DNA of 64,000 nt from Eutreptiella sp. 'Long Island Sound 2002' (GCA_964036045.1 OZ038378.1:173414001-173478000), one strand, 5' to 3'. Positions 3,931 through 33,276 are shown, counted from the stretch's first letter. Program-made: numbers and translations. Notes: a model not told the origin generated them from the letters alone.

Positions 3931-4224
3931 CTGCCCATCCTCGGTTAGTACTCTCCGGGCCTGCCTGAAAAATGCTTTCAGCAGATTGGAATTGGCCTCT
4001 GCTGCCGTATCTTCGTCTATGCTGCCTAAACTTTCACTGTGCCCTGTCTCCGGAAAGTTGAAGACGATGGTCCGGAACTCCTTCGCACCAGATGCGGTCA
4101 TAATGTCGAGCGAATCTTTTGAAGACCCCTTGATCAATGATGTGGCATCCACTTCAAACATCATCTTAACACCCAGAAATTGCAGCTTCTTCTGCACCTC
4201 GTCAACCTTGAGGTGTTTGGCAAA
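3931..4224 (-). CDS. Exon 9: C-terminal half of DUF2431/Bmt5-Bmt6-like rRNA (uracil-N3) methyltransferase domain
   Basis: FAKHLKVDEVQKKLQFLGVKMMFEVDATSL...FRTIVFNFPETG...NSNLLKAFFRQARRVLTEDGQ contains the VDAT, FNFP(H)xG and NxxLLxxFF motifs of the family. Acceptor tacag at 4225. Donor cag|gtagag at 3931 is likely, but the exon could read on to the stop at 3853. Confidence 0.85.
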
Positions 4225-7200
4225 CTGTACGCACAGGATTGTAGAGTAATTTTTTCATCCAACACAACACAACACAACACAACACAACACAACACAACAC
4301 AACACAACACAACACAACACAACACAACACAACACAACACAACACAACACAACACAACACAAGGAGGAGGAGGAGGAGGAGGAGGAGATGCGGTCCCCCG
4401 TCAGGGCGCACCCGCCGCACAACCCCATGGTGCCCGCCGGCCCTCTCTGGTCTGACCGCGACCGAGAGGGGTCTCTGTCCCGACCCGTCCGGCTAAGCAT
4501 CATGGCGGTGGCTCTCCTCTTCATCTCCTCCCCATTGTCCCCCGGCCCCCGCAACGTGCACGCACTCCCGCCCCACACGCTGCTGGTACCCCCCCCAGGG
4601 GATCGGTTCAGGGGGCAAGACGGAGCGATGGCTCCACTTACGGCACAATCCGCCACCCCCCCTTGGGGAGAGGGACACAGTCTCACGGGTGTGGGCCCTT
4701 AGCCCGCCACGTACTGCCGACTGGCGTTTGGCCGGCGGGTCTCGGGGGCTTGGTCCATAGCCTGATCCCCCCCCCGGCCGCACAGCACTCCTGCCGGAGG
4801 TGTCCGTGCGCGGACCTATACACTCAGACCCCTTCGGCCCTGTGCCCGGGAACGTACCTGGGCTGGAATGTGCCGTGGGGGCTAGCGAGAGGGTCGAAGG
4901 GTGAGCCCCAATAGCTGGTAAGTGACCCGTGGCTAGTACCCGGCCATGCGCAGCGTGGCCAATAGCATGTCCCGCAACCGGCGCACCAGCCGACAGTCGT
5001 GGGGCTCTCTCGTCTCATACAGCCCCATGTAGCGGTGCGGCGGCCCATAGGTGATGAGCCAAAGCAACCGCCGCGCGGGGAGACCGCCTGGCCTGTCGAT
5101 GATAACCACCTGCGCCCCCGGACCGCACGGGGCCAACAGCCCGGGGTGCTGGGTAGCGGCCGGTCCGAGTACCAAAAGACACGCTGGGACCCACCCCAGT
5201 CGGGGGGCAGCTGTTGCCCCGGAGGGATGACGGCAGAGAGCCGCCCATGCTTGCAGACGGGCCACAGCAGGCTCGCCCCGGGGCAAAATCCGGCCATAGC
5301 TGGCTGAGCTCCCCATTCATAGGCGGTCGGGTCAAAACGCTCTGGGACCCGGATCGCAAGATCCCACGTTTGCCCGTCGTCGTCCCGGTAGTGGACCTCT
5401 CGGGCCGCCGGGATGATGGGCATCTCGCGTTTGCGGTCCAAAGCATCCCAAAAGTTGACGACAAGGGCTAGCATCCGTTGCGCGGCTCCCACCACCAGCC
5501 CCCGGTCATACAGGTAAACCAGACCCTCGACTTCCCAATCGCCGAAAGGATCCAAGTATATGGTACGGACCAGATTACTGGCCGTGGGGTGCGACGCACC
5601 CCAGCACTTGTACTCCCACCGCGTCGGCACTTTCCTGGACGCCCTACTGCACGGCGCCGGCGGTGTGACCAAGCACCAGGCCAAAGCGGCCCGGCCCCGG
5701 GTGGGTTGGGTCCGGGGGCTCCAGGAGCCACGGGTATGCTTTACCCACAACGCCGTCCAGGTACACAACTTGGACCGTTTGGTTCACGCCGAGGCCCGCC
5801 GCCTGTGGTGTCTCCACACAGGGGCTCCTGAGCGCCCCGTGCGCAAGTCCTTGTCAGTGTACCACGCGGTCACGGAGCGCAGCCTCATTCGCTAGGGTTC
5901 CCACATCCGCACGATGGCACGGCGTGAAGGCCTGGGACCTACGGGGGATCCCCGCCCTTGCCCCGCTTGCCGGTGAGGACCCCGGATTACCGGATTGCAC
6001 CGCGTCTATGTACCCCTTGCTGTCGTGGAAGGACCATTGCTGACCCCATATACCCCAGATCACCCGATGAGCCCCGCGTGCACGCAGCACCTCCCACACG
6101 ACGTAGAGCTCCACTTGGTAGGACCCGTCCACGTGTACTGGAATGGGTATGGCATACGACTGTTGCCACCCCATCTTGGGGTCCACCACCACCAGCCCCC
6201 CCCCCCCCCCAGGCCAAGTGGTCAGGGTACTAGGAGGCATCTTGCACAAAGACAGCCTCATCCGGGACATCCCATAAAGTGATGCCCTCGGGGGGTTGCT
6301 CCTGGGCCCACTGCATGTTCCTGGGCCATGGGGAGAAGGTCCCCGGTCCGTAAAACCGCGAAGGCCAACCGGCCCTGCGGGTGCAGGTCCAATCCCGGTA
6401 GCTGGCCGCTAGGGCCGCATGAGCGTCGTTCGCCTCATCGACGGTGCTCGCAACCCCTGGGGGGTGTTTGGGCACCTCCACATGATGGTCCTCCAAGACA
6501 GCCCAGACCCGGATGTCCATGAGCCGGGTGTACCGGAGGAATCTATCGTGGTCCGTGGGGTGGCCCTCACAACCCCCGCTAGACCCCACGCACACAACGC
6601 ATGTCTGGGCTAAACTGCCAAAGGGCACACATTAGCCCCCACTTGGCGGAGGCGTGGGTGAGGGGGTTGGGGTGGTTCAATTGGTGGGCGTAGTTGAGCG
6701 ATAAAAACGTGGTCAGCATGTCGGGCCCGAGGGGCAGTATGCCCGAGAGCCCCGCCTCCACAGGCCCTAGCAGGCGGTGCGCCGGCAGATTCTCCCCTAC
6801 GGCAGCGCGCAGGGCGGATACGGCGGGGAGGTCCGCCAAATGCCACACCCATACTTGGGGGGGGGGGGCGGACCCCGGCCTGGATACGCGCCATGCCGCC
6901 CGCCTTCGGGTCGTACATGGCTAGGGGGTATTGTGCCCGCAGAGATTTGAGGGGCACCACCACAAACGCACGGCGGGTCGCCGTCATGAGCTTGCGGAAG
7001 TCCTCCCTGTGATAAACATGCGGGAGGGTGTGCCGCCCCAGGGAGCAGATGCATTCCGACTCCGAGGGTACGGGCAGCCGGACCCCATTCATCCATACGG
7101 AGGGTGCCCCATACCGAACTCGCTGCCCTTCCATCTAGGTGCGCAGCACGTGCATCTTGGACACATCTGACCCCAGCGCCACGGCGTCTTCCGCCGTGGG

Positions 7201-10200
7201 TAGAGCCCCGGCGATGGCACCCGCATCCTCCTTGGAGCCGCCCAACCACACCGTGTCTTCGGCCCAGGCCAGGCTGTGCAGGAGACCCGCCGGGGTGGGT
7301 ACCCCGGGGTAGGCCTTGGACACCATCCTCGCCTTGACCTCTCCCATGGGCGCGTAGTTCAACGGGGAGAGGGGGCAACCCTGCCCGGAGCCAGCATCGA
7401 ACCACCCCGCCGCGTGGTCCACGTCGTTCGTTACGCCCATATCCAGGCGCATGTCCTCCACCAACGAGCGGTGCACGCGGCATAGGGCCGCGTCGTAGCC
7501 TGCCACCCTGGGAACTGAGTCCCGGGAGATGGGTCCGGGGACCCGAAAGCATGCCGGACATCGTCCACGATGGGCCAAGCCTCACCCCGAGAGGCCCAAC
7601 GCTGCCAGAAGTAATCGTGGAGGACCCGGAGAAAGTCCCAGACCAACGTACCCGGCCACAAGGCGAACTGGAAGGGGGGAAGGAAGCCGTGCTTGCGCGG
7701 CCAGGGCTGTTCCTCATCCTTGACCACTAGGCGCACGACCTTGCGGAGGAGGACAAGGTTCGTGAGGGGGTGGTCATTGGCCCCGATACCATGGGGAGGC
7801 TTCTTAGGGAGAAGGTGGAGGTCCCCGTGCGCTACTTAGGCGGCCCTTTACGCACGTCCCAAAATTGCCACAGTTCCCAAATGGGTACCACCCCAAAACG
7901 GGGGCTCAAAAACCACTTTGAAAAATTGCACAATTGCGCTCTGCAGGGAACACCCCTATAAGCCTGTGAATTATCCAAAATGACTGTGTGTAGGGGGTAC
8001 CACATGTGCCAGTCAAAATTCATGTATTCCTTTCAAATTTGGGCACTGCAGTGTCCATCCGAAGAAAAATCCAATTGTTCCATGTCATCCACTGGTGCAT
8101 TTCAAACCACACTGCAAAATGCAACCTAAAACATGAAGCAAGGATGATGACAGGCAAGCACATGCAAAACTTTGGTTTGTTTTTTGTTACAGCTGCTGCT
8201 GACCCAGTCACTGTGATTGTATGCGAACCGTGAGAAACAATGCACCATCAGTGCAGCCAACAAGCAATGGAGGCGCCGCCAGTGCAGCCAATGCAATAAT
8301 AAATGAGGGCAACAATGCTTGCAAAAGAAATGGCGCAGCAGGGGTAAAAAAATGGCGAGTGGATGAATTTGGGCACTGCAGCGCCCAAAATTACCAAAAC
8401 ATGAAAAAGGGCACCAGTCTCACACCTGTGTAGAATAGGACGCGCAACAGCGTGCAAATCGAGTCGAAAAAAAATACTGACAGAGACACAGGCAGTATTT
8501 TTCCGCGCAACGCAGTCTACTTCTTCTTCGGGGGAGCCTTCTTGCCCTTGGCCTGACCCACTTTGGCGTGGAACGTATTGAGGGGGGTACTGTCCTTGGC
8601 CTTTTTGGCTGGCTTTTTGGGGGGACCATCATCCTCATCCCCACTGTCCTCGGAGCACAGCTTCTTCTTGCTGGGTGTGCTCCTCTTCTTGCTGTCACTA
8701 CCTCCGACCAGCACAATCTCCTCCTCCTCCTCTTCCTCCACATCGTCCCCCCCCTCCTCATCCTCCCCGTCCCCCGGCCTCTGCACCACAACTGGCATAC
8801 AGTCCCTAATCCTTGGCATCCAAGCGTCCCAGTTAACCAAGTAGACACAGTCCATCTCCTGCACATACGCCGCTAGCTGTTCACAGAATTCGTTAAACAA
8901 ACCCTGCTGCCCAGTGAAACAAGCTGCCACACAGGGGGACTCAGGAAGGCAGGACAGAAGCTGTGCTGGCAATACAGCCGACGCTGTCAGAAGCAGGAGC
9001 CACACTTCATCCTCAGACTCTCTGTCCCGTCGGGGAACAATACCAAGCACACGCAGGAGCCAACCAGCCGCTGCCAGACCAATGGTGCTGCCGTATGCAC
9101 CCTGATCGCAAATGAAAATATTCGGGACCTTCACCCTAAACTTGTTTGGGACACAGAAGCAAATAGTCCTCTCCTCGAACCGATAGGTTAGGGTTGGACC
9201 GGGCTGGACCGGAGGGACTCGGGTGTAACCGTCGCTGTGTGGGGGAAGAAAAAAAAAATACCTGACGGATGGCGCCCCCCCTCGGTTCCATAATAGTCAC
9301 CTCTTCTCGCCGGGAGGGGATGGCGCCCCTCCACGGCACAACAACCGGGGGGCCTCCCCTTGGTTCATATATCCTTCAAATTGTCAGCGCCGTTGTTGGC
9401 GTCACCGGTGGTAGGAACCCGGGGGGCCTCCCCTTATTTCAATTTCATCCATCGTATTCCGACCGGCCGCCCCACGTGGGATTCCCCGCATGGGGGGCAC
9501 GGGGGGGCCTCCCCTTACTTCAGAAACTTTTCGTTTTTATTCCCAAGTTCACACGTCACACAAGTCCTGCGACCTGGGGGGCCTCCCCTTCTTTCAGGTT
9601 AGTGTACGCCGCTGGTAGGGGATGGCGCCCCTCCGCGTTATCACGGGCACAGGAACAGTAACGGGGGGCCTCCCCTTGTTTCACAGCAATTCCTAGGGAG
9701 CCAGACGTCGAGGCTGCAGGCAGGTGCCATTACCCCGGCGCAGTGAGCACCGTAGCGGCAGGCGCTGGCCCTTACCTCCGCCACGATGCTGTCTCCCCTT
9801 TATTCCACCACCTCCCAGCTCCGGTCCAGGCATCCCGCCGGGTGCAGCAGGGCGCGTGGCTGTGAGGCCTGATGTCACGGTTGCCCCGCATTGCATCGCA
9901 GGGCAGGACCGGTAGCCCCCCGTGACATCAGGCCCCCGGCCGAAGGCCATAGTGGTTGTGCCCCTGGCCCGGACGGGCGTCGGATAGGACGATATCCCCA
10001 CCCCATGATGTACCTGTGCAGAACACAAGGTGCAGTGGGTTGGGGTAGGGGAGCGCACACGAGCCCTGGAGGGGCTGGGTCACAGGGGGACCCGGGTTAC
10101 TCCCGCATACCGCCACCCCCCGGTGGAGCCCGCCCTGTGCCATCGTGGCTTTCCCACGGTGGCCGGCGAGGGGTGGGGCGCGCGATCCCGTGCCCTGGCC

Positions 10201-13200
10201 GCCGCGGCTGGACCAGGGCACCCCCCAGATTGCGTGTTAGCCCGGGGGGGACCCCCCCCCGGTTTCACCCCCACACCACGGTGAGGTCACGCGCCCCTGG
10301 GCAGCAGTGGGGGTATAGCGCGCACTAAGACACACAGCGCTCCCGTTTACCTGTACCCGTGGGTAGGCATCCCGGCCATTGCCTTCTGGAAACAGCGCCT
10401 TCGGCACAACACAACACAACACAGCACAGCACAGCACAGCACAACACAACACAACACAACACAACACAACACAACACAACACAACACAACACAACACAAC
10501 ACAACACAACACAACACAACACAGCACAGCAACACAGCACAGCACAACACAACACAACACAACACAACACAACACAACACAGCACAGCACAGCACAACAC
10601 AACACAACACAACACAACACAGCACAACACAGCACAGCACAGCACAGCACAGCACAGCACAACACAACACAACACAACACAACACAACACAACACAGCAC
10701 AGCACAACACAACACAACACAACACGACACAACACAACACAACACGACACAACACAACACAACACAACACAACACAACACAACACAACACAACACAACAC
10801 AACACAGTACAGCACAATACAACACGGCACAGACACATTGCGACACAACACGACCGTCACAACACAGGACACACAGCATTGCAACACAATCCAATGCAAC
10901 ACGGCACAGCATATGCAACACACAACAAAACACCATGCAAACAAAAGGCAACCAAACAAGTCTTCGGTGATGTACAGGGCTTGGAATGCCAGGGAAACGT
11001 TCCCTGGTGACCCCTGGAGGAGCGACACGTGCACTGAAATCAAACGCCCCCAGTTAAAAACGTGGTGCCAAATGTGCTTAAAAAAAGAGCACGCTCACTT
11101 TGAACTCTTCCTTTTGGACCTCAAAAAATACTGTGTTTGAACAGAATGCTACGTCAATCACCGCACATCACACCACATGCCACAGTACATGTGCGCGATG
11201 GACACAGCACGCTGTTGTTTTCCTCCTTTTCTTGAACATGCACGTTGGAATAGCCTAAGCTGTTGTCAATCTTGCACAACAGCTTTTTCCATTTTGCTGT
11301 TGTTGCAGCATCAAAGGGCTGACCCATTCTTTGCTCAGCTTTGGCATCACGGACTGAACAAATTCTGATGCTGTTGGCATGAATGCTCACTCATAACCTT
11401 CATCACTTTGGTATGCAATTCAGAAGGGGCGGTAGCAGTGGCAGAGACCTACATGTACCATGCCGACGATGCCCAATTTTTCGGTCAGTCCTCCTTGCAT
11501 GACTACCTGCTCACAAAACACTACAGGCCATGCTCCTGGGGCCCCTTGGTGTCAAAGTGTTCAGCTGGGCGTGTCAGACTGGTCTGGGTAGAGAAAATGA
11601 AGGGGGGGGGGGGCGCATCCTCTTGTTTGGCCCATGCGCGGGGGGGGGGGGGGTTGTATTGCTGTGATGCTATGGCAGGTGTAGAAACAAACAATTTGCC
11701 CTGCCCTCTTTCTTCAAAACCATTGAAGCCACATAGTAGAGTGCATGTTCCCAAGCTGTGGGCTGTTCCCAGGTGGTGGGTCTACTTCAAGAGCAGTGGG
11801 GCGTTGGGAATGAGAAGGGTGGTGGAAGAGTTTGGGTCAGCTTTGTGGGCATGGTTGCATTTCTCTGTCGGCAAATCCATCTTGAACTTTCTATGTTTAC
11901 CATGGCCAATCACCGTGTTTGCTATCATTTGTGGTGCACCGCTTGCACAGTACACAAGGCACCTTGATATGAATATTTTAACACATCCGAGAGCAATACA
12001 TTGACCAACATTGTAACTGAAAAAAACATCTATTCGAGACGGAGTGTTTGACGCTCTTGCCAAATCTCGCATTTGAGTTTGGGTCTGCGGCCTGAAAGGG
12101 CACCAAATGTGCAAGCTTCGTCAGGGGAAGAAGGCCCGGCACCTCCGATGCTACTGTGTCCGAAGTGGCGACCATGCCACCTCCTGTCCCGAGGGCCCAT
12201 GCCAAAGCAGAAGTGAAGGAAAAATTGCCCTCGCCCAAAAGCAGCGTTGGGGTCTTGTACAGGCTCTTGTAGACCGAGGGGACGGAGATGCCACGGGGCA
12301 AGTTCACAGGGCTAATCAGGATCCGCATGTTCTTCAACCGCGAAGCTCGAATCTCCATGTTCAAGGCATTGTACACAGACTCAGGTTTTCCAAAAACGAA
12401 GACTGCCTCCCCTCTCCCAGTTTCCAGCCACCTGAAGCAAGGTCAGGGGACGGTCTGCAGGCCAGGGCAAGTGGCAATGAAGGGAGCGGAGGGTTGAAGA
12501 GGGGTCCCAACATTCAGCAATCCTGAACAGCTTCAACAACCGTCAGCAACCCTCAAAGACCTGCAACAGGTTACAACAACCCTCAGCACCCCTCAACTAC
12601 CCCAACAACCCCCCAACTACTCTCAACTACCCTCACCAGCAAGAATCCTCGACAACCCCCAGCAACCGCGACACAGGGCTTAGAAGTACCGATTTCCCAT
12701 GCTGCTCAAAGGTACAGGCTTTTATGGCACGCCCCAGGGGCCATATTGCTTGAGTAACCTCTTCTACCTTCCGTACGTTACCATACTGTCTGCCCCCCCC
12801 CCCAACCCCCCAACCCGTCCCTTGTTGCCCAAGGGTTAATACCTCTGTCATCCCCCTTTCCACTTGCCTCCTCCAAGGCTTTGGACGGCCCATCCTTGGC
12901 CTCACGAGTGGGCCATGACTGAGGCATTCCCCCCTTGTCCTCCACACTGGTGCACATGATAAACCTGAAAATACGCATTCGCAAGCTGGTGACAGCTGAG
13001 GGGTGTAGCTCAGTTGTTGGTGCACTGGACTTCAGGTGTGAGGGTCCTCCGTTCATTCCCCTAAAGACACAGGGTTCCACATGTTGGTTGTGTTATGTGA
13101 GTACGCCTAAACTTTTATCAACTATTTCACAGCTGCATGCCCAGAAAAAAACGGTCCGTGTTGTTCTCTGGTGGCCTCTAGAACATTCCTGGTGCTCTCT

Positions 13201-25200: not shown

Positions 25201-28200
25201 TTCACCAACTTCTGATGTTTGCCAATTTTTGGTGGGGTTACTCCTCTAGAATCCACTCGCAGCTGTGTCCCACTGGCACCTGACCTGAAGCCTGGATAGC
25301 AGTAAGGAGCTCTAATGCGTAGATGACAGGTCATCAAGGGCGTCAGGTGTGTGGGATGTCCCAGATGCAAGGTGGAGTGGACCAATTTGGGTGACAGGGC
25401 CAATAGATCAACCGCAGGTTTGGCATCCAATGGGGGATGCCCTGCAGTGTGTTGAGTGAAGCTCAACAAGAGGAAGGGTGGTGGATAAGCTACCTACGAA
25501 CGTGTCATCTCATCTTCCTCAACAGAAAACATACAGAGCAATGAAGATGATGCAGGATATGCGGGACAGCGTTGCTTCATACCACATCACAGGGACAACG
25601 TTATCATCCTCCAAGCACACAACGCCAAGTGCCACATGAGCAAGTGACACTTTTGAACGCTCGCGTGACACTTCTCCAAGTCACCTCATAGAGGTTGCTA
25701 GATCAAAACCACGCAGGCCCACATGCATCGTAATACGCTACATAAGCCCCCCCCCCCCCCACCTTGGGCCTATTCGCATACCCCACCCCAAGGGGTTGAA
25801 TTGTTGGCTTAACCCCTTGTAAAATCATTATTTTATTTATTATGAAATTATTTTGTCCAGAAAACGCATCCCCCAATGAGTTTTTGGTTACGGCCCCCCT
25901 AGACCCCCACCACCACCACTTGAAACCCACTTTTTTGAGGGGTGGGGGTCAAAAAATGTCAAAAAAAAGACACCCCCCCCCTCTGTTCTGGCGAAAAAGT
26001 GTTGTTGGGTCCCGACGCCATAGGGTTTGTGTTGGCAGAGTGGGATGAGTGCTTATGCAGTTTATGCAGCTTTCAGCCATTTTTGCTATGTTGGCATTTT
26101 TGGCGACCTTAGTGAACCCGTGGTGGTGCCCATTGTGAGTGGTGCAAGTGGGGATGTTGTGATAGTATATGCATGCTGGGTGGACCTATTTTTTTTCAGC
26201 CTCTGGCCTTGCCTAGGGCTGGTCATGGTCTGCATGGAAGACACAAAATGACTGATTCCACAAAAAGTGGCCTGCATGTGTTGGGTGAAAAATGCACTTT
26301 TTCCGGCGACCCTTGTGTCCCTAAGGGCTGTTGTCGGGGGATCGTTTGGTGACCATGGGGGTGCGTCTACAGCCATGCGGAGCCATGTAGCACCAGCCGC
26401 CATCGCCATAAGCATCCATACCTCTTCCGCGGCTCTGAGGTCCTAAGCGCTTCTGAGGTAGTTGCCTGTGGGCTCTTTGGCCTCACGTGGGATAATGGAT
26501 ACCGTTAGACTCCCTTTGGAGTCTACAATCTACCTGCCTGCACCCTGCGCCGTGGAGTACACAACCAGAGTGCCCATGAGTGGCTTGGCTTTTGCCGCAA
26601 GCATCCTTTGCATTTGGTGTGGATCCGCCTGGATTTGCATGCAGTTGAGGTAGAAAATGCACGCACCGCCATCTTGGATAACCACTTGCTAGACGTCTCT
26701 GTGTCACCTGCATGCCGCATATGGCGGGCGTGACACAGGACGCAAAATTTGTTGCTTTTAGGCGGATATCTGGCACACATTGTGTCAATGCCCAATCCTT
26801 GTGAGGATGCTGCTGCCCGGAAGCCACCTACGAGGCGCCGGTCCCGTGACTCTTCTCAGTGGGAGGACACCGATGAACTGCTGCACAGGAATCCCCCGTC
26901 CCAGTGACCTGCCCCTCTACCTCATCCTTCCTCCGTCCCATTGGTCAGTGGGACTCCCACGACTCCCACTCACACGATCTTCGATGCTGGCTTGGTCACT
27001 GCTGTTGCAAACTTATTCCACACACAGATGAGATGGGGGGGCGCACAACAACACTGCTGTTCCCCAGGGAGCACATGACCTGTGTTGTGGTGAATCCCAG
27101 GATCTGCACTCAGGCCTTCATTCTACATGGCCTCTACATGGCTGATGGGCCGATCAAATACGAAGACAGGCAGGGATGCCGACCGAACAACATTGTACTG
27201 TGCGAACAATATCTTCAAAAAACAACAACAAGCAACGGTCGCGGTGGATAACCGCCGGTAATTGCCGGTTGGCCATCACGGTTGAGGTGGGAAGGGGTTG
27301 GGGTTGGAGGAAGCAGTTGACTGCCGGCGTGGCGGCCGAGGCAGAGCCAACCGTGTTTAAAGAACGAAAGAAAACCCGTGTGCTGAAGAACGGTCCCCCG
27401 CATGTGACCCCCGTATGCAGACCTTCTTGTAGCGCTTCAAGAAATCGGTGAACAGCTCTTGTGAGCCCGGGAAAATATCGTTGGAGTAAGCCCAGCGCTG
27501 CAGGATATTGACGAACACGGTGGTGTAGGGGGGCGCGTGCTCCTCTAGCAGCCGCTCCACGTGTATTTGCAGGACAAAGGCGTAGCTCCCAGAGGCAAGT
27601 GCGTCGATGGCCTTCCAGATCACGGTCTTCCGGTGCAGCGGGGCCTTGCAAAGCTGCTCGACGATCGCCTGCAAACGAGGCACGGGAAGAGGGTGCGTGC
27701 GCATAGGGCAGGGCCGGTCTCAATATCCTTCCAGAAAAATGCAGGCATCCGACACCAACGCAGTCGCCCCCATCTCACTGCCCCTCCCGCGTGCGTTGAC
27801 CGCACGGATACGCATGGACGTTTTACCCCTCCCCTCGTTCGTGTTGCAGCCATGGACTGGGGTCCACAAATGCGGTTCACGGGCGGCGGTTGAGGTCGGC
27901 GATTTCCCGCTCTGATCAAGGACTGCCCTGGTCATCTGAAACCGGTGGGGCAGTTGCATGCAGAAGTAGCTTGTGCTTTGCATAACCCTTGCCTGACACC
28001 ATTGTCCCTACCCCTGCCCCTGCCCCTGCCACTCGTTGGCCGAAAATGGACCAAACCAAGGTCATGGAGCCCCTCAGGCTTTCATGTCCAGCGCTTCAAA
28101 TGAATGCTGCGTCCTCGTGCACAGCGCACACACTGCGCAGTACTTTTGTAGGATTCACTATTCGTGGCCCATGACGCCCTCACCACGAAAATCACCGCTG

Positions 28201-31200
28201 TGGGCCCAAGGTCTACCTCCGACACTTGCTTCATGTACGTCAGGTTGTGCGAGGCCTGCGCCACAAATCGCTGCAGGTCCTTCCGGAAATTCTCGGACTC
28301 CATCCTCAGCGTCAGCAGCGAGCATGCAATGCTCTTGGGGACCACCAGCGCCTGGATCTCTGCCTCCACGTCGGGTGGCCACACACTCTTCTTGTTCCAC
28401 ACGCTCAGCAACTGCGCGTAGGCAGCGGCGGTGTCGGCACTGGGGTGCATGCACCGGTGCAGGAGCTTGGGGAGGCACGGCGCGAAGCACGGCACGAATG
28501 CGGCCTTGTGCCGGACCACCAGCGTGTCCATCGCGTACCATATTGCGAGACGGTCATGGCAGTCGGTACGGCCGAGGTACGCGATGACTTCGTGCGCGAT
28601 GTCGACCGCAAAGGCGACATTCCCCTTAGCCCAGCTCTCGAAGTTCGCGATGCTGCTGCTGTCCGGGTTGAGCTTGTAGAGCTCCTCCCGCGCCGCAGTG
28701 CGCATGGCGGCACGGTTGATGGGATCGAGCCCCGGGAGTGATCGCGGCAAGGGGGGCTGCAGCTCACCTTCATATGTGTTGATCTCGGGCTTGCTCTCTT
28801 TTGCGGGCGGAGGGCGTGCCTGTGACGAACGAATGACCGAAAAAAGCGCTTGCTCCAGAGGCAACTGGCAAGTATAACCCTAGCCTCCTCCCTGGCAATA
28901 GCTTAGCCAAGTGCAGCCCCGGGCCTAACTCGCAGAAAGGAGGGTCAAGGAGATTCCGAGGTGCACAAGCATCCTCTGGTGGGCGGATCCCAGCAAATCA
29001 GTGGATTTGAGGGCAGGTCCTAGTTGGTAACTCTGGCACACCAATGGCATTGCGAACTGCAAATTCTGTTGCCTTCAGCAAGGAGTATCCCCCCCTGTGT
29101 GACATTCCGTCTGGTTGTTGCTCCTTTACGGGGCCCTGGACGGTCACCCGTTCTTCCCTTCGTATGTTGCGTCGGATCGCTGCTTTCTGTCGGCCGCTGC
29201 GGCCGGTGCTCTTGCTGGTGTCGTTTCCGCGTTCGCGGAGCCCAGTAGTTGGTGTGTTGGGACTGTGCTGAATGTGGCATGGTGTGCCGTTTGCGTGTCA
29301 GCGGCGCCCAATAATTGGCGTATTGAGGATGTGCTGGTTGTTGCTAGGGTCGTTTGACTGTTTTTGCTGTCCACACACCTCTGTCCACAGGCCGTCCATA
29401 GCCTGCCTCGCTGTGTTTCTGTGCGGCCCAGGTGCCCTGTTCCTCCACGCGCTGTCTGGGCCGTCCACCATATGTCCTTTTCCCCCTCACGGTTGGTCTG
29501 CCCCTAGTGGGCTCCCGCTCTTGTTGCGCAAACAGCCCATCTGGGCTGCGGGAGACACCCCCCACCTGATGCCGGTTGAGCAGGGGTTGCCCTGGCACCC
29601 GGTAGCGACGGGGCTGGTGGCCAAGCCATCCCCTTTATTGTCGCTCCTCCCATGCGCACGCTCCACCATCCGCTCCATTCTGGTTCCCTGTTCCCGCTGT
29701 TCTGGTTGCCTCTCCTGCCTTGCTGTGCCCCTCTTCCTTGTCTGGTGTGCCCGCCCTTGTCCCCCTTGGTGTTGGTGTGGCTCCCGCGTTCTGTGTGTCT
29801 GTGTTGCTCCTCCCCCTGTCTGGTGGCGCTCCCGGGTGCCCATGTCGTGCACCCCCTCCGGTCCCACCCGCCTGCCCCCCCGTACGAGGATTTCACATCT
29901 CCGTACGACGTGGACTGTCCCATGCGCGGTTGGTTGTTCACGGCCCTGTTGCCACCCCCGTGGCGGGCACCTCCCGGCGCGCGGGGCACAGCCGGGTTCA
30001 GGGCGCCTGCGCCTGCGCTTGATCAAACGAACCTCTTCGAGGTGATTTACGGCATACGTGTCCAGATTCCACGCAACTGTTTTCGCCCACAGATATCTTG
30101 TTCAACATGATGCTCAAACTTTCGGAATTGAGGTAAAGCACCACATCAATTTCATGCGAGGCGCCTGATGCAGATTGTTACCCACCCTTGCACAGGTCTG
30201 CTTTGCAATGAATCTTCTGCCCACCCACATGAGTACTGTTGGCGTGGTCGCTCAGAGGCAAAGGGAGGGGTTGCAATCCCCGAATACCAGGGGCCTTGGC
30301 CGTGTTTGCTGTTGTTGCTCTGGTCCGCCTGACGCTGCGACGAATGAATTCGGCGTCGCCTGCCACACATCCCAAAAATTCATCACGGCCCTGCTGGCCC
30401 GAACCTACCGCTTGGAACGCGCTGACTACCCACTTTCTCACGGGGCCCTGACTGTTTCCACTTCGGCTGCTCTCCTCCACGTGCCATCGGATTGTTTGTC
30501 GACATCTTGCAGACTGGCTGCCTTCAACTGACTCAGGTAGATAGTAGAGGTAGCGTCCTTGGGTGATCACCAAACTCCAGTTTCGCCCATATCAGTGCGC
30601 CCTCCCTGTCAGGCCAATGCAGTACGGATGGCGCACCCTCTTCAGGGTGCGCACCATCAGTACCAATGAGGGCATCGGCAAGTGGGTGTCTCATGCGCGC
30701 ACGACCCGTATCAGTTGGCACATGGGCAAATCACAACATGGGTTCACACATCTCAGGAAGGGGCTTGAAAGGGGGGTGCGGGACCCCTGACGGACCCCGC
30801 GCGCCCGAGCCGGTGCAAAAGCAAACAACCGTACAAGGTGCGCACGGTCCGGACCAGACAGCGCATCGGCAAGGGGGAACTCGTACATAGCAGTCCCGAT
30901 TCCCTGGGCTGGTCCCACCTTTCACCACCCCTTTGCTTGTGGATGCTATCAATTGGAGTACATGTGCAACGACGAGATGTAGCGGACGTGTATCGAAGCT
31001 TCAGGAAGCAGCAACAATGGCAACACTGGAAGCCGATGCCGATGCCAGTACGCAACCGCAGTGCCGCCGAAAGCACAGCTGTGGCTGTACCGTGTTGGGA
31101 ATGGGATGCTTTACCTGCTGGAGCACCTGAATTTTTGATCACACAACTCTGAAGTTGTCAGGACGGGGAGGGGGTCATGTCAGGTGAGTGGGTCTACTCA

Positions 31201-33276
31201 AAACATGCCCCCCGCGCCCTCTACAAATGAGGCTTAGGCCCGGCCTGAAATCCAGCTGGCTTTGGTCGCACCGATCACCTGATGCACGCGCATTGCAGGT
31301 GTTGTGGCTCAGCTTGTGTGGGCGCCGCGTGCAGTGCCTAAGCGCGAAGCTCTGGGCATCCGTATGGGCGTGTGGATGCCTTGTGTTGGAAGGTTCCGTG
31401 GGTGAATGTGGAGGGGTTCAGGGCTGAGCTGAGGCGAGTGCTTGGGGAAAGGCTGGGAGCTGGGAGTGGGACAGTTGGGGTTGAGGGCCGTCGCTGGGGC
31501 GGGGCTATGATTAGATGCGAGGCAGGTCGTATGGAGTTCCAACACCTCACGCGGTCGCCTCTGCCTGGCACGTGTCGAGGTTGCCGCTGTGGGACGTGCA
31601 GCAGCCAACTTGGGCTTCTTTTGGGCTGGGGCTGGGGAACCGCCGATCTCCATCACCTCATCCTCACTATCCTCTAGGATCTGTGACAGTGCAGGAGAAC
31701 ACCGAGTGGCTAAGGGTCGAAGCCCTACCTCAACACTGACAGTGTCAACGAGGAAGTGGACGGTTAAGCCCAGGGCAGGGGTGCTCATTCTGCCAACGGG
31801 ACATGGGGTGCTCGTTGGACAGTTGGGAAACAGTGATGGCGGCGATGGCACCAGTTCCTTGCGCGCCGCCGTTCGTTGCAAAATGACACACAAAACAGTG
31901 GTCCAGAACACAAGTACCTCTATAGAATCCACTTCTGCATGCGGTCGCTTCGCCGCCGAGGGCTTGGGCTTGGCGACCCGCGACCCACCCGGCTTCAGCG
32001 GAAGCTGCGTCCGTGGCCGCTTCGGCGGCGGCGGCTCATCATCGGAGTCCCCAATCTCAATTGCATCGTCGATAGATGCCGCGCCCTTGCTGCTCTTCAC
32101 GCTTGGATGCTTCGGTGGAATGTTTTGGGGTGCTTCCATAGCGACACTTGTATTTAGGCTGGAGGCCTGGCTCGCCTCCGCCGCCGGGTCCGCCGCAGCA
32201 CCACCCTCCATTTTCACATCACCAGTAACCCTCTCCATTTTCACATCATCAGCGGACTTCGCAACACCTTGCACTCCCTCCTCTTGTTTCGCATTGCCCG
32301 CTTTCTCTTGCTCTCTCTCTTGCTTCACACTTGCATCACCCATGGGCGATTCCTCCATTTTCACATCATCAGCGCCCGACTTCACGACATGCCCAGTACC
32401 TTGCACTCCCTCCTCTTGTTCTACATTGCCATTTGTCTCTTGCTCTCTCTCTTGTTTCACACTTCCATCACCCATGGGCGATTCCTCCATTTTCCCATCA
32501 TCAGCCCCCGACTTTGAGACATGCCCAGCACCTTGCACTCCCTCCTCTTGTTTCTCATCGCTAACTTTCTCTTGCTCTTTCTCTTGTTCCACACTTGCAT
32601 CACCCGTCGGCGATTCCCCTTGTAGTTTCAAATTGCCACCGTTGTCTTGCGCTCCCTGCTCGTTTTCAACAACGCCACTCAACGCTAACGCCACGCCGCC
32701 CCCACTTCCTTGTAGCCCATCCTCCCCCATGACACTGTCACCATTCTCCGTTGTGACCGGTGCATCGTTTCCAACTCCTTGTTCACGTTTGCCATCGTCC
32801 GTTTGTTCGTGTCCACAACCCCCTTCCAACATGTCGCCACCTTGAGTGTTGACCTCCGAGCTCTCTTCCATCACACCACCCCCCTCATCAGTCTCTTCCT
32901 GACCACAACCCCCTTCCAACATGTCGCCAGCTTGAGCATTGACCTCTGAGCTCTCTTCCATCACGCCACCCCCCTCATCGGTCTCTTCTAGCGCACAACC
33001 AACTTGCATTTTGTCGCCAACTTGAGCGTTATCCTTGGAGCTCTCTTCCATCATACAACCCCGCATTGTGTCGTCGTTACCCTTTGTCTCGTCGTCACGA
33101 TCATGATTCCCACCACAATATTCTCCGACTACATCTTCCGCCATGCCCGCATTACTACTCCCCGCTTGTGCCTCTTGATTCTCATCAACCCCCACTTTTT
33201 CCGCGGCGTCGGGGTCGGGAACAACAACATCATTTTGTGAAGCGGTTGGTGTTTCTTTTGGGGCATCCGCCATCAT
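3931..33276 (-). CDS. Multi-exon gene, >=1359 aa: acidic N-terminus, 2x CID/RPR, Pro-rich linker, 3x KH, RRM, DUF2431/Bmt5-like methyltransferase. The 3' end is not resolved.
   Basis: Exons (minus): 33276-31918, 31680-31546, 28819-28184, 27668-27423, 22195-21608, 19509-19213, 15848-15616, 12431-12143, 4224-3931. All introns are GT-AG with compatible phases (0,0,0,0,0,0,2,0), 4077 nt in total. CID2, KH, RRM and methyltransferase motifs read continuously across the junctions. Confidence 0.8.
4260..4362. repeat. Perfect (CAACA)n / (TTGTG)n microsatellite, ~20 units
   Basis: Directly visible. It abuts the (GGA)8 tail of the retroelement. Confidence 0.98.
5870..6270 (-). pseudogene. RNase H domain of the non-LTR element (frameshifted)
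   Basis: The four catalytic-type motifs appear in order: VFVQDAS (D), GSYQVELYVV (E), FHDSKGYI (D), HRADVGTLANEAA (D). GGGGLVVVD follows the first motif. Confidence 0.7.
6900..7850 (-). pseudogene. Reverse transcriptase domain of the non-LTR element (frameshifted)
   Basis: NDHPLTNLVLLRKVV (domain 2), IVDDVRHAFGSPD (domain 3), GSGQGCPLSPLNYAP (domain 4), LHSLAWAEDTVW (YADD box, here WAED), CICSLGRH (domain 7-like). Confidence 0.88.
8517..9134 (-). CDS. Unknown ORF or terminal exon with acidic and Lys-rich C-terminus, inside the block interrupting the retroelement
   Basis: 205 open codons. An AG precedes it (aaacaagtttag|ggtgaag). It has a globular-looking N-half and an EDEEEG/KKPAKKAK tail. 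No family recognised. Confidence 0.45.
   Translation of the reverse strand: MKVPNIFICDQGAYGSTIGLAAAGWLLRVLGIVPRRDRESEDEVWLLLLTASAVLPAQLLSCLPESPCVAACFTGQQGLFNEFCEQLAAYVQEMDCVYLVNWDAWMPRIRDCMPVVVQRPGDGEDEEGGDDVEEEEEEEIVLVGGSDSKKRSTPSKKKLCSEDSGDEDDGPPKKPAKKAKDSTPLNTFHAKVGQAKGKKAPPKKK
9347..9683. repeat. Array of five 21-nt direct repeats GGGGGGCCTCCCCTT-NN-TTCA with dissimilar 53-66 nt spacers
   Basis: Repeats at 9347-9367, 9421-9441, 9502-9522, 9576-9596, 9663-9683. Spacers are 53, 60, 53 and 66 nt. Confidence 0.9.
10405..10930. repeat. (CACAA/CACAG)n compound microsatellite decaying into unique sequence
   Basis: About 80 pentamer units to ~10825, then degenerate. It abuts the truncated 5' end of the retroelement. 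Confidence 0.97.
12143..12431 (-). CDS. Exon 8: RRM C-terminal half plus start of methyltransferase domain
   Basis: WLETGRGEAVFVFGKPESVYNAL is RNP1-like. TLLLGEGNFSFTSALA...MVATS is the DUF2431 N-terminal SAM-binding signature (GEGD/NFSF). Acceptor cttcag, donor gag|gtgccg. Confidence 0.85.
14930..15125. repeat. Degenerate (GGTT/GGC)n simple repeat next to AGGGCGGTCCTT inverted-repeat motifs
   Basis: ggttggcggttggtggc array. AGGGCGGTCCTT occurs near 14845 and 15133, with its reverse complement near 15169-15180. Confidence 0.85.
15616..15848 (-). CDS. Exon 7: end of KH3 and start of RRM
   Basis: RIRRNTQAHIALKGRELFIEGSRKQVEDALTEI completes a KH fold. LKLLLRGLPEDVKPTDYHQQF is RNP2-like. Acceptor ctgtgcag, donor gg|gtatgt. 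Confidence 0.85.
17390..18480 (+). pseudogene. Fragment of a second non-LTR retrotransposon (AP endonuclease C-terminus plus linker)
   Basis: LWLLGGDYYS (GDFN-like), GRPHFWVNRGST (PTF-like) and VIGHVDAIAV (SDH-like) occur in order across a frameshift, followed by an open linker. Confidence 0.45.
19213..19509 (-). CDS. Exon 6: KH2 and start of KH3
   Basis: ...ERTWTSINVTGLQIVVTGDGKNVDMSLEAV... and TVLGMAGQRLQ (GxxG loop), which continues into RIRRNTQAHI of exon 7. Acceptor accag, donor cag|gtgcat. Confidence 0.85.
20200..21340. repeat. Degenerate tandem repeat family B (CCCCATGGG...ATCACCCAAACCCATCC), related copies at 24010-24900
   Basis: Motif near 20232, 20590, 20790 and 20930, and related motifs near 24015-24070, 24370-24430, 24660-24720. 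A terminal block at 21240-21330 resembles the reverse complement of 25735-25835. Confidence 0.7.
21608..22195 (-). CDS. Exon 5: Pro/Ala/Glu-rich linker plus KH1 (degenerate GxxG)
   Basis: ASVTAATPASS...PEPVVMSP... then QRVPLTSEQHMCLSGRNSDGGRYIASKSGARVVLHQDAAVVSGRHKAVELA. Acceptor ccacag, donor gcg|gtatgt. Confidence 0.85.
22740..23200. repeat. Nested direct repeats with ~21-bp GTAGACACT..CTGCCCC subunits
   Basis: Blocks at 22855-22970 and 23045-23140 are homologous. GGCCGAAGGCCCCC recurs near 22750 and 23146. Confidence 0.75.
26523..26795 (-). pseudogene. Possible Cys-rich zinc-ribbon remnant (piggyBac C-terminal-like)
   Basis: KFCVLC...IHTKCKGC...WLC pattern only. Confidence 0.3.
27423..27668 (-). 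CDS. Exon 4: second CID/RPR domain, C-terminal part
   Basis: AIVEQLCKAPLHRKTVIWKAIDAL...VNILQRWAYSNDIFPG aligns by eye with the PCF11-type CID (KAPxxxKLxxxYLxDSI...W..IFP). Acceptor tttgcag, donor aag|gtctgc. Confidence 0.85.
28184..28819 (-). CDS. Exon 3: first CID/RPR domain and start of the second
   Basis: LYKLNPDSSSIANFESWAKGNVAFAVDIAHEVIAYL...RLAIWYAMDTLVVRH...QLLSVWNKKSVWP is a CID signature. Acceptor gtcacag, donor gtg|gtgagg. Confidence 0.85.
29089..29350. repeat. Probable short dispersed (SINE-like) repeat
   Basis: GC-rich non-coding block starting ccccccctgtgtgacattccgtc. I recall it as a high-copy euglenid repeat, but there is no second copy in this window to confirm it. Confidence 0.35.
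30093..30790 (+). pseudogene. Nested antisense spliced gene remnant in intron 2 (possibly CxC/KDZ transposon-derived)
   Basis: Three phase-compatible GT-AG exons (30093-30132, 30196-30536, 30613-~30790) with one in-frame TGA at 30529-30531. Confidence 0.35.
31546..31680 (-). CDS. Exon 2: low-complexity acidic/basic segment
   Basis: ILEDSEDEVMEIGGSPAPAQKKPKLAAARPTAATSTRARQRRPRE. Acceptor gtcacag, donor gag|gtgttg. 135 nt, phase 0/0. Confidence 0.75.
31918..33276 (-). CDS. Exon 1: 453-aa acidic disordered N-terminus with internal repeats
   Basis: Starts MMADAPKETP. Contains repeated GGGVMEESSEVNAQ.GDMLEGGCG.E.TD and MEESPMGD.SVKQEREQE units, and an NLS-like PPPKRPR. Donor gag|gtactt. Confidence 0.75.

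Follow-up and report, generated by a model that had tools for sequence, protein, structure and literature searches.

In the 64,000-nucleotide stretch of Eutreptiella sp. 'Long Island Sound 2002' DNA analysed here (the window), a single gene very probably carries CID, KH, RRM-like and BMT5-like methyltransferase domains in one polypeptide. This is a new domain architecture assembled from known parts. By sequence comparison, the layout is conserved in paralogues and, for the KH-RRM-like-BMT5 core, in Euglena longa. On balance, we read the locus as one protein-coding euglenid (Euglena-like) gene of at least 11 exons that extends over about 38 kb of the minus strand, with nine exons inside the window and a predicted product of about 1500 residues.

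Gene model and exon structure

Read on the minus strand from 33276 to 3931, nine GT-AG exons with compatible phases form one reading frame. An earlier note on this DNA had proposed nine phase-compatible exons, and all were found on the minus strand with canonical AG and GT borders. The junction motifs that it quoted are also present (GQRLQ/RIRR at 6/7 and VASE/FAKHLK at 8/9, with the RRM split at 7/8). Position 3931, where its interval stops, is not the end of the gene but a splice donor (CAG/GTAGAG) that joins in phase to exon 10, and exons 10 and 11 lie past the window start. The predicted protein begins with an acidic, probably disordered N-terminus that has SIM-like acidic motifs and NLS-like basic patches. 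Next come a CID of the RPRD/Pcf11/Nrd1 type and a second, degenerate CID-like domain, which a proline-rich linker separates from three KH-type units. An RRM-like domain follows, then a complete BMT5-like domain (PF10354; Rossmann-fold, SAM-dependent), and a conserved tail forms the C-terminus.

Three relatives with continuous frames are referred to throughout. P0003 is a transcript ORF from E. longa (GGOE01017859.1.p1; EukProt, 'complete'). P0009 (1109 aa) and P0014 (1007 aa) come from other contigs of the present assembly, each as a single ORF with the same order of parts. The exons are as follows.

Exon 1, 31918 to 33276, minus strand: N-terminus, acidic, rich in repeats and probably disordered; the frame is open up to a GT donor at 31917, with a predicted start at 33276.
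Exon 2, 31546 to 31680, minus strand: second acidic motif (L-E-D-S-E-D-E-V-M-E-I) and a basic stretch; AG/GT borders, phase 0.
Exon 3, 28226 to 28819, minus strand: CID1 (about 28367-28690) and the first ~38 codons of CID-like domain 2 (28339-28226); Pfam CID match.
Exon 4, 27423 to 27668, minus strand: rest of CID-like domain 2; the alignment with the continuous ORFs P0009 and P0014 runs unbroken through junction 3/4.
Exon 5, 21608 to 22195, minus strand: Pro/Ala-rich linker, then KH1 (about 21760-21608, completed in exon 6); inside a 519-residue HSP with E. longa P0003.
Exon 6, 19213 to 19509, minus strand: end of KH1, KH2 (no GXXG loop) and first half of KH3 with its G-M-A-G loop; AG/GT borders, phase 0; alignable with the KH units of P0003.
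Exon 7, 15616 to 15848, minus strand: KH3 (second half) and RRM-like domain (first half); Pfam KH_1 match at 16.8 bits (E 0.0057).
Exon 8, 12143 to 12431, minus strand: this one exon contains the second half of the RRM-like domain, then a short linker, then motif I of the BMT5-like domain (L-L-L-G-E-G-N-F-S-F).
Exon 9, 3931 to 4224, minus strand: BMT5-like core (profile 40-131) with the F-N-F-P-E-T-G motif; Pfam 55.5 bits, E 1.1e-14; ends at a splice donor.
Exon 10, L001 16696-16866, 2.5 kb beyond the window start: BMT5-like profile positions 123-165, completing the methyltransferase domain.
Exon 11, L001 from 18324, 4.1 kb beyond the window start: further coding exon, downstream of exon 10.

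Exon 1 contains two in-frame tandem repeats (132 nt, 2.7 copies; 90 nt, 2.9 copies), and its last ~50 codons hold an acidic motif, I-E-I-G-D-S-D-D-E, followed by a KRPR basic patch. Its 3' part can be aligned with the N-termini of P0014 and P0009, and exon 2 lies inside an HSP that pairs model positions 404-788 with P0014 2-392. The exon 5 acceptor is uncertain because the proline-rich stretch of this exon is open in two frames; at the level of exons, phase is the sole support for this acceptor and the join to exon 4. Exon 6 alone gave no Pfam match. Exon 8 is 45% identical to P0003 501-583.

The methyltransferase, RNA-binding and CID domains

The Bmt5-type methyltransferase domain that had been claimed is borne out by Pfam, where exon 9 alone scores 55.5 bits against a BMT5-like (PF10354) cut-off of 24.7. 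Exon 8 adds 20.6 bits (profile 1-30) and exon 10 adds 18.3 bits (123-165), and together exons 8-10 cover profile positions 1-165. The family motifs GEGNFSF, VATS, VDAT, FNFP and W...WPEY are kept, and SAM-binding motif I (G-x-G-x-F-S-F) is intact in exon 8 as L-L-L-G-E-G-N-F-S-F. The histidine of FNFPH is replaced by glutamate, which is also found in P0003 and P0011; P0008, P0009, P0014, plant proteins and FDXACB1 keep the histidine. Yeast Bmt5 and Bmt6 are m3U methyltransferases, and the glycine of their SAM motif is required for activity (PMC3950682). The sequence suggests that the protein is probably an active RNA methyltransferase.

It is very improbable that the protein is instead a termination or 3'-end factor of the Nrd1/Seb1/SCAF8 kind, in which the BMT5-like fold would be only an RNA- or SAM-sensing module. 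SAM-binding motif I is intact, as are the other family motifs. The His-to-Glu change in FNFPH could point to such a loss of activity within the subfamily, but three diverged relatives retain the same change, which speaks for selection on a site that still works; P0009 and P0014, moreover, keep the histidine. A CID with an RRM is nevertheless the hallmark layout of Nrd1/Seb1/SCAF4/8, and the CID fold matches agree with it.

Three KH domains had also been proposed. In this gene they fall below the Pfam threshold, the pieces in the window scoring 16.8 and 11.9 bits (E 0.0057 and E 0.2) against a KH_1 (PF00013) cut-off of 21.5, and each piece is partial because introns split the domains. What speaks for them is the 519-residue alignment with the E. 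longa protein, whose model matches tandem-KH folds. That fold was tested on P0003:285-560 (pLDDT 73), which is 30% identical to this gene, and Foldseek returned Pno1/Dim2, PCBP2 KH1-2, Krr1 and IMP1 KH3-4 with a probability of 1.0 and E about 1e-5. The paralogue P0014 scores 48.5 bits against Pfam KH_1. The GXXG loop is G-M-A-G in KH3, is longer in KH1 and is missing from KH2.

The RRM of the earlier note is split at 7/8 as it described, but is RRM-like only. Pfam has no RRM (PF00076) match for it, nor for any relative at E up to 10. No aromatic residue is present in the RNP2-like stretch (L-L-L-R-G-L), and R-G-E-A-V-F-V-F matches RNP1 only in part. In the AF2 model of P0003 the elements follow, roughly, the order beta-alpha-beta-beta-alpha-beta, at pLDDT 56-75. 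A profile of four relatives matches hnRNP H/F quasi-RRMs and the SART3 RRM (E 0.011-1.8; best, hnRNP H/F at 0.011), and the language-model neighbours of the domain are RRM clusters (score 0.75; a lead only). A resemblance to quasi-RRMs is thus suggested, with weak support.

As for the tandem CIDs, CID1 scores well above the Pfam cut-off (PF04818; 34.4 bits, E 2.9e-8, cut-off 23.9), and CID2 is a diverged duplicate of it by hhalign (P 83%, E 9.2e-6) with no Pfam match of its own. Pfam also fails to detect the CID domains of the paralogues. The best PDB sequence match of CID1 is the RPRD2 CID (E 0.018); the eight-helix right-handed superhelical fold of CIDs was found, and the structure of the Nrd1 CID with a Sen1 peptide (6o3w) is among the fold matches. 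Where RPRD2 has F-Y-L-A-N-D, CID1 has I-W-Y-A-M-D, so that the Tyr and Asp of the helix-4 motif, which together with an Arg of helix 7 are the CTD-contacting residues of CIDs, are kept and the Asn is lost. CID2 has I-W-K-A-I-D, without the conserved Tyr, and CID1 of the paralogues has lost both Tyr and Asp.

Support for the joins

RNA contigs from runs X1 and X2 (estuary metatranscriptome) end at 12143, 15614-15616 and 15848-15853, which are three predicted splice sites, and the extra letters at the contig ends are compatible with both sides of the joint. One X1 contig for exon 7 carries 50 further letters that, by depth arithmetic, are the start of exon 8, joining the two exons. Exon 8 is covered from 12143 to 12379 by X1 and X2 contigs with zero mismatches, breaking at the GT donor. 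RNA depth is zero in the introns, whereas DNA depth in runs X4 and X6 is uniform (~29x). For exon 3, a fraction of 0.57 of the sampled words is present in run X12 (estuary metatranscriptome). The fusion of the RNA-binding part to the methyltransferase needs no splicing argument, because the SAM-binding motif lies in exon 8 together with the RRM-like domain's second half. This single exon and the RNA contig show that the KH/RRM and methyltransferase parts are physically linked.

The homologues with continuous frames span every junction except 4/5. P0003 is aligned over model positions 906-1416 (E 9e-74), crossing junctions 5/6 to 10/11, and P0009 and P0014 cross junctions 1/2 to 3/4. All three share with this gene the KH-RRM-like-BMT5 core (135.6 bits for the BMT5-like domain of P0014 in Pfam) and the N-terminal acidic motifs, and P0009 and P0014 also share the tandem CID-like region in the same order. 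They are only 27-30% identical to this gene, however. P0003 has no CIDs. P0009 and P0014 are largely free of introns and contain two KH units, not three; their FNFPH motif has its His, and the Tyr/Asp signature is gone from their CID1.

At junction 4/5, which links the CID and KH parts, none of the RNA contigs examined covers the join, and its support comes from phase compatibility and from the two paralogues with both parts in one ORF. It is the only junction that neither RNA nor a solid homologue alignment covers, and intron 4 is 5.2 kb long. There could accordingly be two transcription units, exons 1-4 encoding a CID protein and exons 5-11 a KH-RRM-methyltransferase of the E. longa type, the exon 5 acceptor taking a trans-spliced spliced leader. 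We consider this improbable. P0003 is indeed a complete ORF without a CID, but it keeps the N-terminal acidic motifs that are found here in exons 1-2 and that exons 5-11 alone would be without. Upstream of KH1, exon 5 does contain an in-frame Met, yet the exon opens in phase at an AG and has ~120 more open codons before this Met. No stop codon closes exon 4, whose end is a phase-0 GT donor, and the order CID-CID-KH-RRM-MTase is found in single uninterrupted ORFs in both paralogues. Separately, a product without CIDs is possible, as P0003 has none and no RNA joins exons 4 and 5.

Proposed function and known systems

The most likely role, which we put forward tentatively, is that of a nuclear, Pol II-associated RNA base methyltransferase, for which transcription-coupled action is plausible. 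The protein would be nuclear, and CID1 would dock on a phosphorylated partner, most likely the RNA polymerase II tail. The KH and RRM-like domains would hold single-stranded nascent RNA while the BMT5-like domain methylates a base, most likely uridine at N3 by analogy with yeast Bmt5/Bmt6. The targets would be Pol II transcripts, during or just after transcription. Counting against Pol II docking, CID2 lacks the Tyr, CID1 of the paralogues lacks Tyr/Asp and, to our knowledge, kinetoplastid relatives have no canonical heptad CTD.

The main rival, in our view rather unlikely, is a ribosome-biogenesis enzyme: a Bmt5/Bmt6-type m3U methyltransferase for large-subunit rRNA that acquired KH and RRM to hold pre-rRNA, its CID-like domains binding a phosphopeptide of another factor and not Pol II. 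The large-subunit rRNA of Euglena is fragmented, and the Nrd1 CID also binds Trf4 and Sen1 motifs; the match to the Nrd1 CID with Sen1 peptide would suit this reading, but Tyr and Asp of the CTD-binding helix are still present in CID1. For PF10354 enzymes, experiments have assigned no substrates other than 25S rRNA uridines (m3U2634 and m3U2843), and Bmt5 is nucleolar (PMC3950682). Against this, the same assembly has a short BMT5-like ORF, P0008 (303 aa), that could serve rRNA, and the genome holds three or more fused paralogues, a number that seems too high for only two rRNA sites. In the fold search, the KH region matched the pre-ribosomal tandem-KH factors Pno1/Dim2 and Krr1 best, but tandem-KH matches are generic, and PCBP2, IMP1 and FBP are in the same list.

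An unlikely but further-reaching form of the Pol II-associated reading is that euglenids have a family of Pol II-tethered m3U writers acting on nascent mRNA, snRNA or spliced-leader RNA, with the CID, KH and RRM-like domains choosing the substrate. If true, euglenids would provide the first dedicated co-transcriptional m3U system, and with it a type of enzyme to consider for cap-adjacent m3U in Euglenozoa, where the activity that makes the m3U of the kinetoplastid cap 4 has yet to be reported (PMC11417388). The cap-adjacent idea is weakened for this organism because the Euglena spliced leader, according to one review, has a trimethylguanosine cap rather than cap 4 (PMC3388326).

The statement that no known protein combines these domains agrees with our limited searches, which did not find the full combination outside euglenid or euglenid-like sequences, but it applies to a small euglenid family and not to a single gene. 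The gene resembles Bmt5/Bmt6 in its catalytic family, with a Pfam score above threshold and SAM motif I and most family motifs kept. Bmt5/Bmt6, however, are stand-alone proteins of about 340-365 residues without CID, KH or RRM, whereas the domain here is at the end of a predicted protein of ~1500 residues and has a 9-residue insertion and Glu for the FNFPH His. The only other fusion of a BMT5-like domain with an RNA-binding-type domain among the returns of the searches is FDXACB1 (P0015, PF03147 and PF10354; Atlas cluster). This combines it with an FDX-ACB anticodon-binding fold, and in contrast with this gene the methyltransferase is N-terminal and CID, KH and RRM are missing.

Nrd1, Seb1, SCAF4 and SCAF8 are CID and RRM readers of the Pol II CTD in termination. 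As in these proteins, an N-terminal CID is followed by single-stranded-RNA-binding domains in one polypeptide; they carry a single CID and a canonical RRM but lack an enzyme domain, in contrast with the duplicated CID, three KH units, quasi-RRM and methyltransferase here. PCIF1/CAPAM and CMTR1 are RNA methyltransferases tethered to the Ser5-phosphorylated Pol II CTD that modify nascent transcripts. PCIF1 and CMTR1 use a WW reader and other catalytic families (m6Am; cap 2'-O) and are without KH or RRM; no WW domain was found in any Pfam scan, the reader here being the CID. The likeness to PCIF1/CMTR1 is in logic only, a CTD-reading module fused to a SAM-dependent RNA methyltransferase, and for this gene it is a prediction from sequence.

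Exon structure and transcript evidence

The exons of the studied gene were delimited by stop-to-stop translation of candidate pieces, followed by reading of their borders. The earlier note had described nine phase-compatible exons, with domain motifs completed across several of their junctions. All nine are present on the minus strand, each flanked by AG and GT, with phase 0 at every junction except 7/8 (phase 2), and the junction motifs it cited were all found in the sequence. Position 3931, where the stretch it described stops, is a donor (CAG/GTAGAG) and not the gene's end, and exons 10 and 11 lie beyond the window start, on the genomic contig stretch L001, which was reached via a gene-caller ORF (P0001) on exon 9.

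Exons of the studied gene (exons 1 to 9 in window positions, each with AG before and GT after; exons 10 and 11 in L001 positions, found by tblastn with relatives)
Exon 1: 33276-31918, minus strand; start codon provisional
Exon 2: 31680-31546, minus strand
Exon 3: 28819-28226, minus strand; CID exon
Exon 4: 27668-27423, minus strand
Exon 5: 22195-21608, minus strand
Exon 6: 19509-19213, minus strand
Exon 7: 15848-15616, minus strand
Exon 8: 12431-12143, minus strand
Exon 9: 4224-3931, minus strand
Exon 10: L001 16696-16866; 2.5 kb outside the window, past its first base
Exon 11: from L001 18324; 3' limit provisional

Exon 10 continues exon 9 in phase and aligns with the BMT5-like profile (PF10354) at positions 123-165. 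A read-through of exon 9 into V-E-L-L-L-L-S-G, which mimics the family strand G-E-I-H-V-T, was ruled out because exon 10 gives the better in-phase continuation (I-L-V-T-M-R-D...W...W-P-E-Y), matching five relatives. The model predicts a protein of about 1511 residues, with a provisional start codon and a provisional end to its last exon. The model mends an annotation that has only isolated ORFs on this contig. An Rfam scan of the window found no RNA family.

Four runs were compared over 11700-16300. Depth in the two DNA runs (X4 and X6) is flat at about 29x across exons and introns; coverage in the two RNA runs (X1, an estuary metatranscriptome, and X2) is confined to exons. Contigs from both RNA runs end at 12143, the exon 8 donor, with 6 and 12 extra letters that disagree with the intron sequence. 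One X1 contig reaches 15853, five ambiguous letters past the exon 7 acceptor (15848), and has 172 more upstream letters outside the compared stretch. Another reaches 15614, overrunning the exon 7 donor (15616) by two letters that fit either side of the joint, and has 50 more letters. The mean depth of 2.78 in the bin 12316-12469 equals (64 bases at 3.9 + 50 bases at 3.58)/154, and the 50 extra letters therefore belong to the start of exon 8, at 12380-12429. By this depth arithmetic the joint between exons 7 and 8 is present in RNA with zero mismatches. Additionally, 57% of the sampled words of exon 3 occur in a second estuary metatranscriptome (X12), which places this exon in an RNA library, linkage aside.

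Exon 8 is a single open frame, covered by single RNA contigs, that leads from the latter half of the RRM-like region (W-L-E-T-G-R-G-E-A-V-F-V-F...) through a short linker into the SAM motif L-L-L-G-E-G-N-F-S-F. Since both parts lie in one frame, the key fusion is independent of splicing.

Several introns are repeat-rich. Very high-copy repeats lie at 14780-15241 (intron 7) and 16012-16300 (intron 6), with a summed contig depth of 1e5-1e6 in the DNA runs versus about 29x in the flanks. They also occur in the RNA runs, and show many internal rearranged joints and G/T-rich GGTTGGCGG-type units. In the 7.9-kb intron 8, the stretch 4260-10930 has (TTGTG)n microsatellite blocks at either end, in which ORFs read C-C-V-V-L repeats.

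Domain composition of the predicted protein

Domains that span junctions were judged by scripts and via relatives with continuous ORFs. Where the earlier note had proposed tandem CIDs, the second domain stands as a diverged homologue of the first: a profile-profile comparison using three paralogues relates them (P 83%, E 9e-6, 76 columns). CID2 has both signature motifs of CID1 but a Lys in place of the CID1 Tyr, and on this sequence we label it CID-like only.

The KH domains proposed there are borne out by fold in one relative and by Pfam in another, but the partial pieces in the window score 16.8 and 11.9 bits, under the Pfam threshold. The predicted model of residues 285-560 of the Euglena longa ORF P0003 (pLDDT 73) has repeated beta-alpha-alpha-beta-beta-alpha units and matches tandem-KH structures (probability 1.0), and the paralogue P0014 has a Pfam-significant KH_1 (48.5 bits). 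In the studied gene the GXXG loop of KH3 is G-M-A-G, completed across junction 6/7; the loop of KH1 is extended and KH2 is without one. The RRM fared less well, as Pfam matched none in any relative. Weak profile matches to the quasi-RRMs of hnRNP H/F and the RRM of SART3, language-model neighbours that are RRM clusters, and a roughly right order of strands and helices in a predicted model of modest confidence weakly suggest an RRM-like region, perhaps of the quasi-RRM kind.

The Bmt5-type methyltransferase domain proposed in the earlier note is borne out: positions 1 to 165 of the BMT5-like profile are covered across exons 8, 9 and 10, with the family motifs intact. The studied gene, P0003 and an environmental relative (P0011) share two subfamily marks, a 9-residue insertion and a Glu for the His of F-N-F-P-H. 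The rival reading of a catalytically silent methyltransferase domain would draw on that substitution, and has to be weighed against the intact motifs.

The N-termini of the family (window 31918-32080 and 31546-31680; P0003; the paralogues P0009 and P0014) carry one to three copies per member of a short acidic motif: hydrophobic residues, then D/S-S-D/E-D/E-E, then a K/R-rich patch (for example, I-E-I-G-D-S-D-D-E and L-E-L-D-G-S-D-E-E-D-E-V-V-E-V). From their sequence, we take the motif and its basic patch to resemble a phospho-regulated SUMO-interaction motif and a nuclear localisation signal. Exon 1 has in-frame tandem repeats of 132 nt (x2.7; 32265-32617) and 90 nt (x2.9; 32806-33062), which form an acidic N-terminal region missing from the paralogues. 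At the other end, a tail of about 60 residues follows the methyltransferase (D-A-Y-T-F...R-L-Y-S-I-C...; exon 11, L001 18324-18500; P0011 320-376). It is conserved between the studied gene and the environmental relative (P0011/P0005) and has no match in Pfam.

Relatives and the integrity of the gene

The best relatives, from Euglena longa and E. mutabilis, point to a euglenid. A Euglena longa transcriptome supplies P0003, an ORF of 759 residues labelled 'complete'. One HSP with it (E 9e-74, 30% identity) covers model residues 906-1416 and spans junctions 5/6, 6/7, 7/8, 8/9, 9/10 and 10/11. In P0011 a single ORF combines the last part of a KH unit with the RRM-like domain, the methyltransferase and the C-terminal tail described above. 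Two paralogues, the second found by a search with the first, are each one unbroken ORF, on two further large contigs of the assembly to which the window belongs.

Paralogues of the studied gene
P0009: L002 10001-13330; 1109 aa, largely intron-free
P0014: L003 3001-6024; 1007 aa, largely intron-free

Identity between the two is 42-49%, and to the model 21-29%. Both are colinear with the model (N-terminal acidic motif with its basic patch, a pair of helical domains, linker, KH units, RRM-like region, BMT5-like domain), and their alignments to it span junctions 1/2, 2/3 and 3/4. The P0009 ORF departs from the methyltransferase profile at position 139 into unrelated sequence, so an intron probably lies close to its 3' end. 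The sequence 5 kb upstream of P0009 contains an RVT_1 ORF.

Junction 4/5, which joins the CID part to the KH part, is the sole junction with neither RNA support nor a solid alignment. Two exact-word scans of JGI metagenome contigs, with words taken from exons 5 and 8, gave no match and hence no transcript contig over this junction. It is here that two separate gene products would divide; the join rests on phase compatibility and on the layout of the paralogues, where both parts share one ORF. We consider it highly probable that this is a single gene with the full architecture. The data show that RNA-binding domains and a complete SAM-dependent methyltransferase domain of the Bmt5/Bmt6 family are combined in one polypeptide, and that in the studied gene and two paralogues this polypeptide also carries CID-type domains.

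A 303-residue BMT5-like ORF (P0008; L005 6001-6912) also has the linker that precedes the methyltransferase in exon 8. Its contig has a depth of 14x versus 31-39x for the other contigs, and it could be either an enzyme on its own or a single exon belonging to another member of the family. The CID-KH-RRM-BMT5 architecture is a family and not a one-off, with at least three members in this assembly besides the short ORF, and several paralogues and a second euglenid retain the layout.

An exhaustive representative search with the 133-residue exon 9 alone gave ten matches, but missed most of the BMT5-like family, and absence of the architecture from diplonemids or kinetoplastids is not inferable from it. 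Word-indexed searches with exon 9, the KH-RRM region of P0003 and the methyltransferase region of P0009 returned little beyond the queries, P0014 and one FDXACB1, and say little on other lineages.

Possible function and comparison with known systems

The CIDs of Pcf11, Nrd1/Seb1, SCAF4/8 and the RPRD proteins bind the phosphorylated Pol II CTD, and in PCIF1 and CMTR1 a CTD reader fused to an RNA methyltransferase provides a route to modification of nascent transcripts. By analogy, CID1 would tether the protein to Pol II during transcription, or to some other phosphorylated partner; the KH and RRM-like domains would grip nascent single-stranded RNA; and the BMT5-like domain would methylate a base, probably N3 of uridine. 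In yeast, Bmt5 and Bmt6 make N3-methyluridine (m3U) in 25S rRNA, and the SAM-motif glycine is required (PMC3950682). This activity favours the rival reading of an rRNA or pre-ribosome enzyme. We place coupling of the predicted methyltransferase to Pol II somewhat short of an even chance.

Besides its occurrence in rRNA, m3U is found in kinetoplastids at the fourth nucleotide of cap 4. The enzyme for the latter is still unreported (PMC11417388), which makes a CTD-linked BMT5-like enzyme in a euglenozoan attractive. Against this idea, according to a review the cap donated by the Euglena spliced leader is trimethylguanosine (PMC3388326), and limited homologue searches found no kinetoplastid relative. 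A role in cap 4 is therefore a low-probability lead.

In keeping with the earlier note, which knew of no protein with this combination, limited homologue searches found PF10354 with a CID, KH or RRM only in euglenid or euglenid-like sequences. The other BMT5-like fusion returned was FDXACB1; the plant BMT5-like proteins returned are tandem repeats, and large ESM Atlas clusters hold the domain alone or with FDX-ACB. All the parts are already known and the logic of the fusion has precedents. We know of no Pol II-coupled m3U writer. The family extends recruitment of the BMT5-like domain into RNA-binding architectures beyond FDXACB1, and a Bmt5-type methyltransferase hard-wired to CTD-reader-type and single-stranded RNA-binding domains is a candidate for methylating bases during transcription, apart from the cap and m6A systems.
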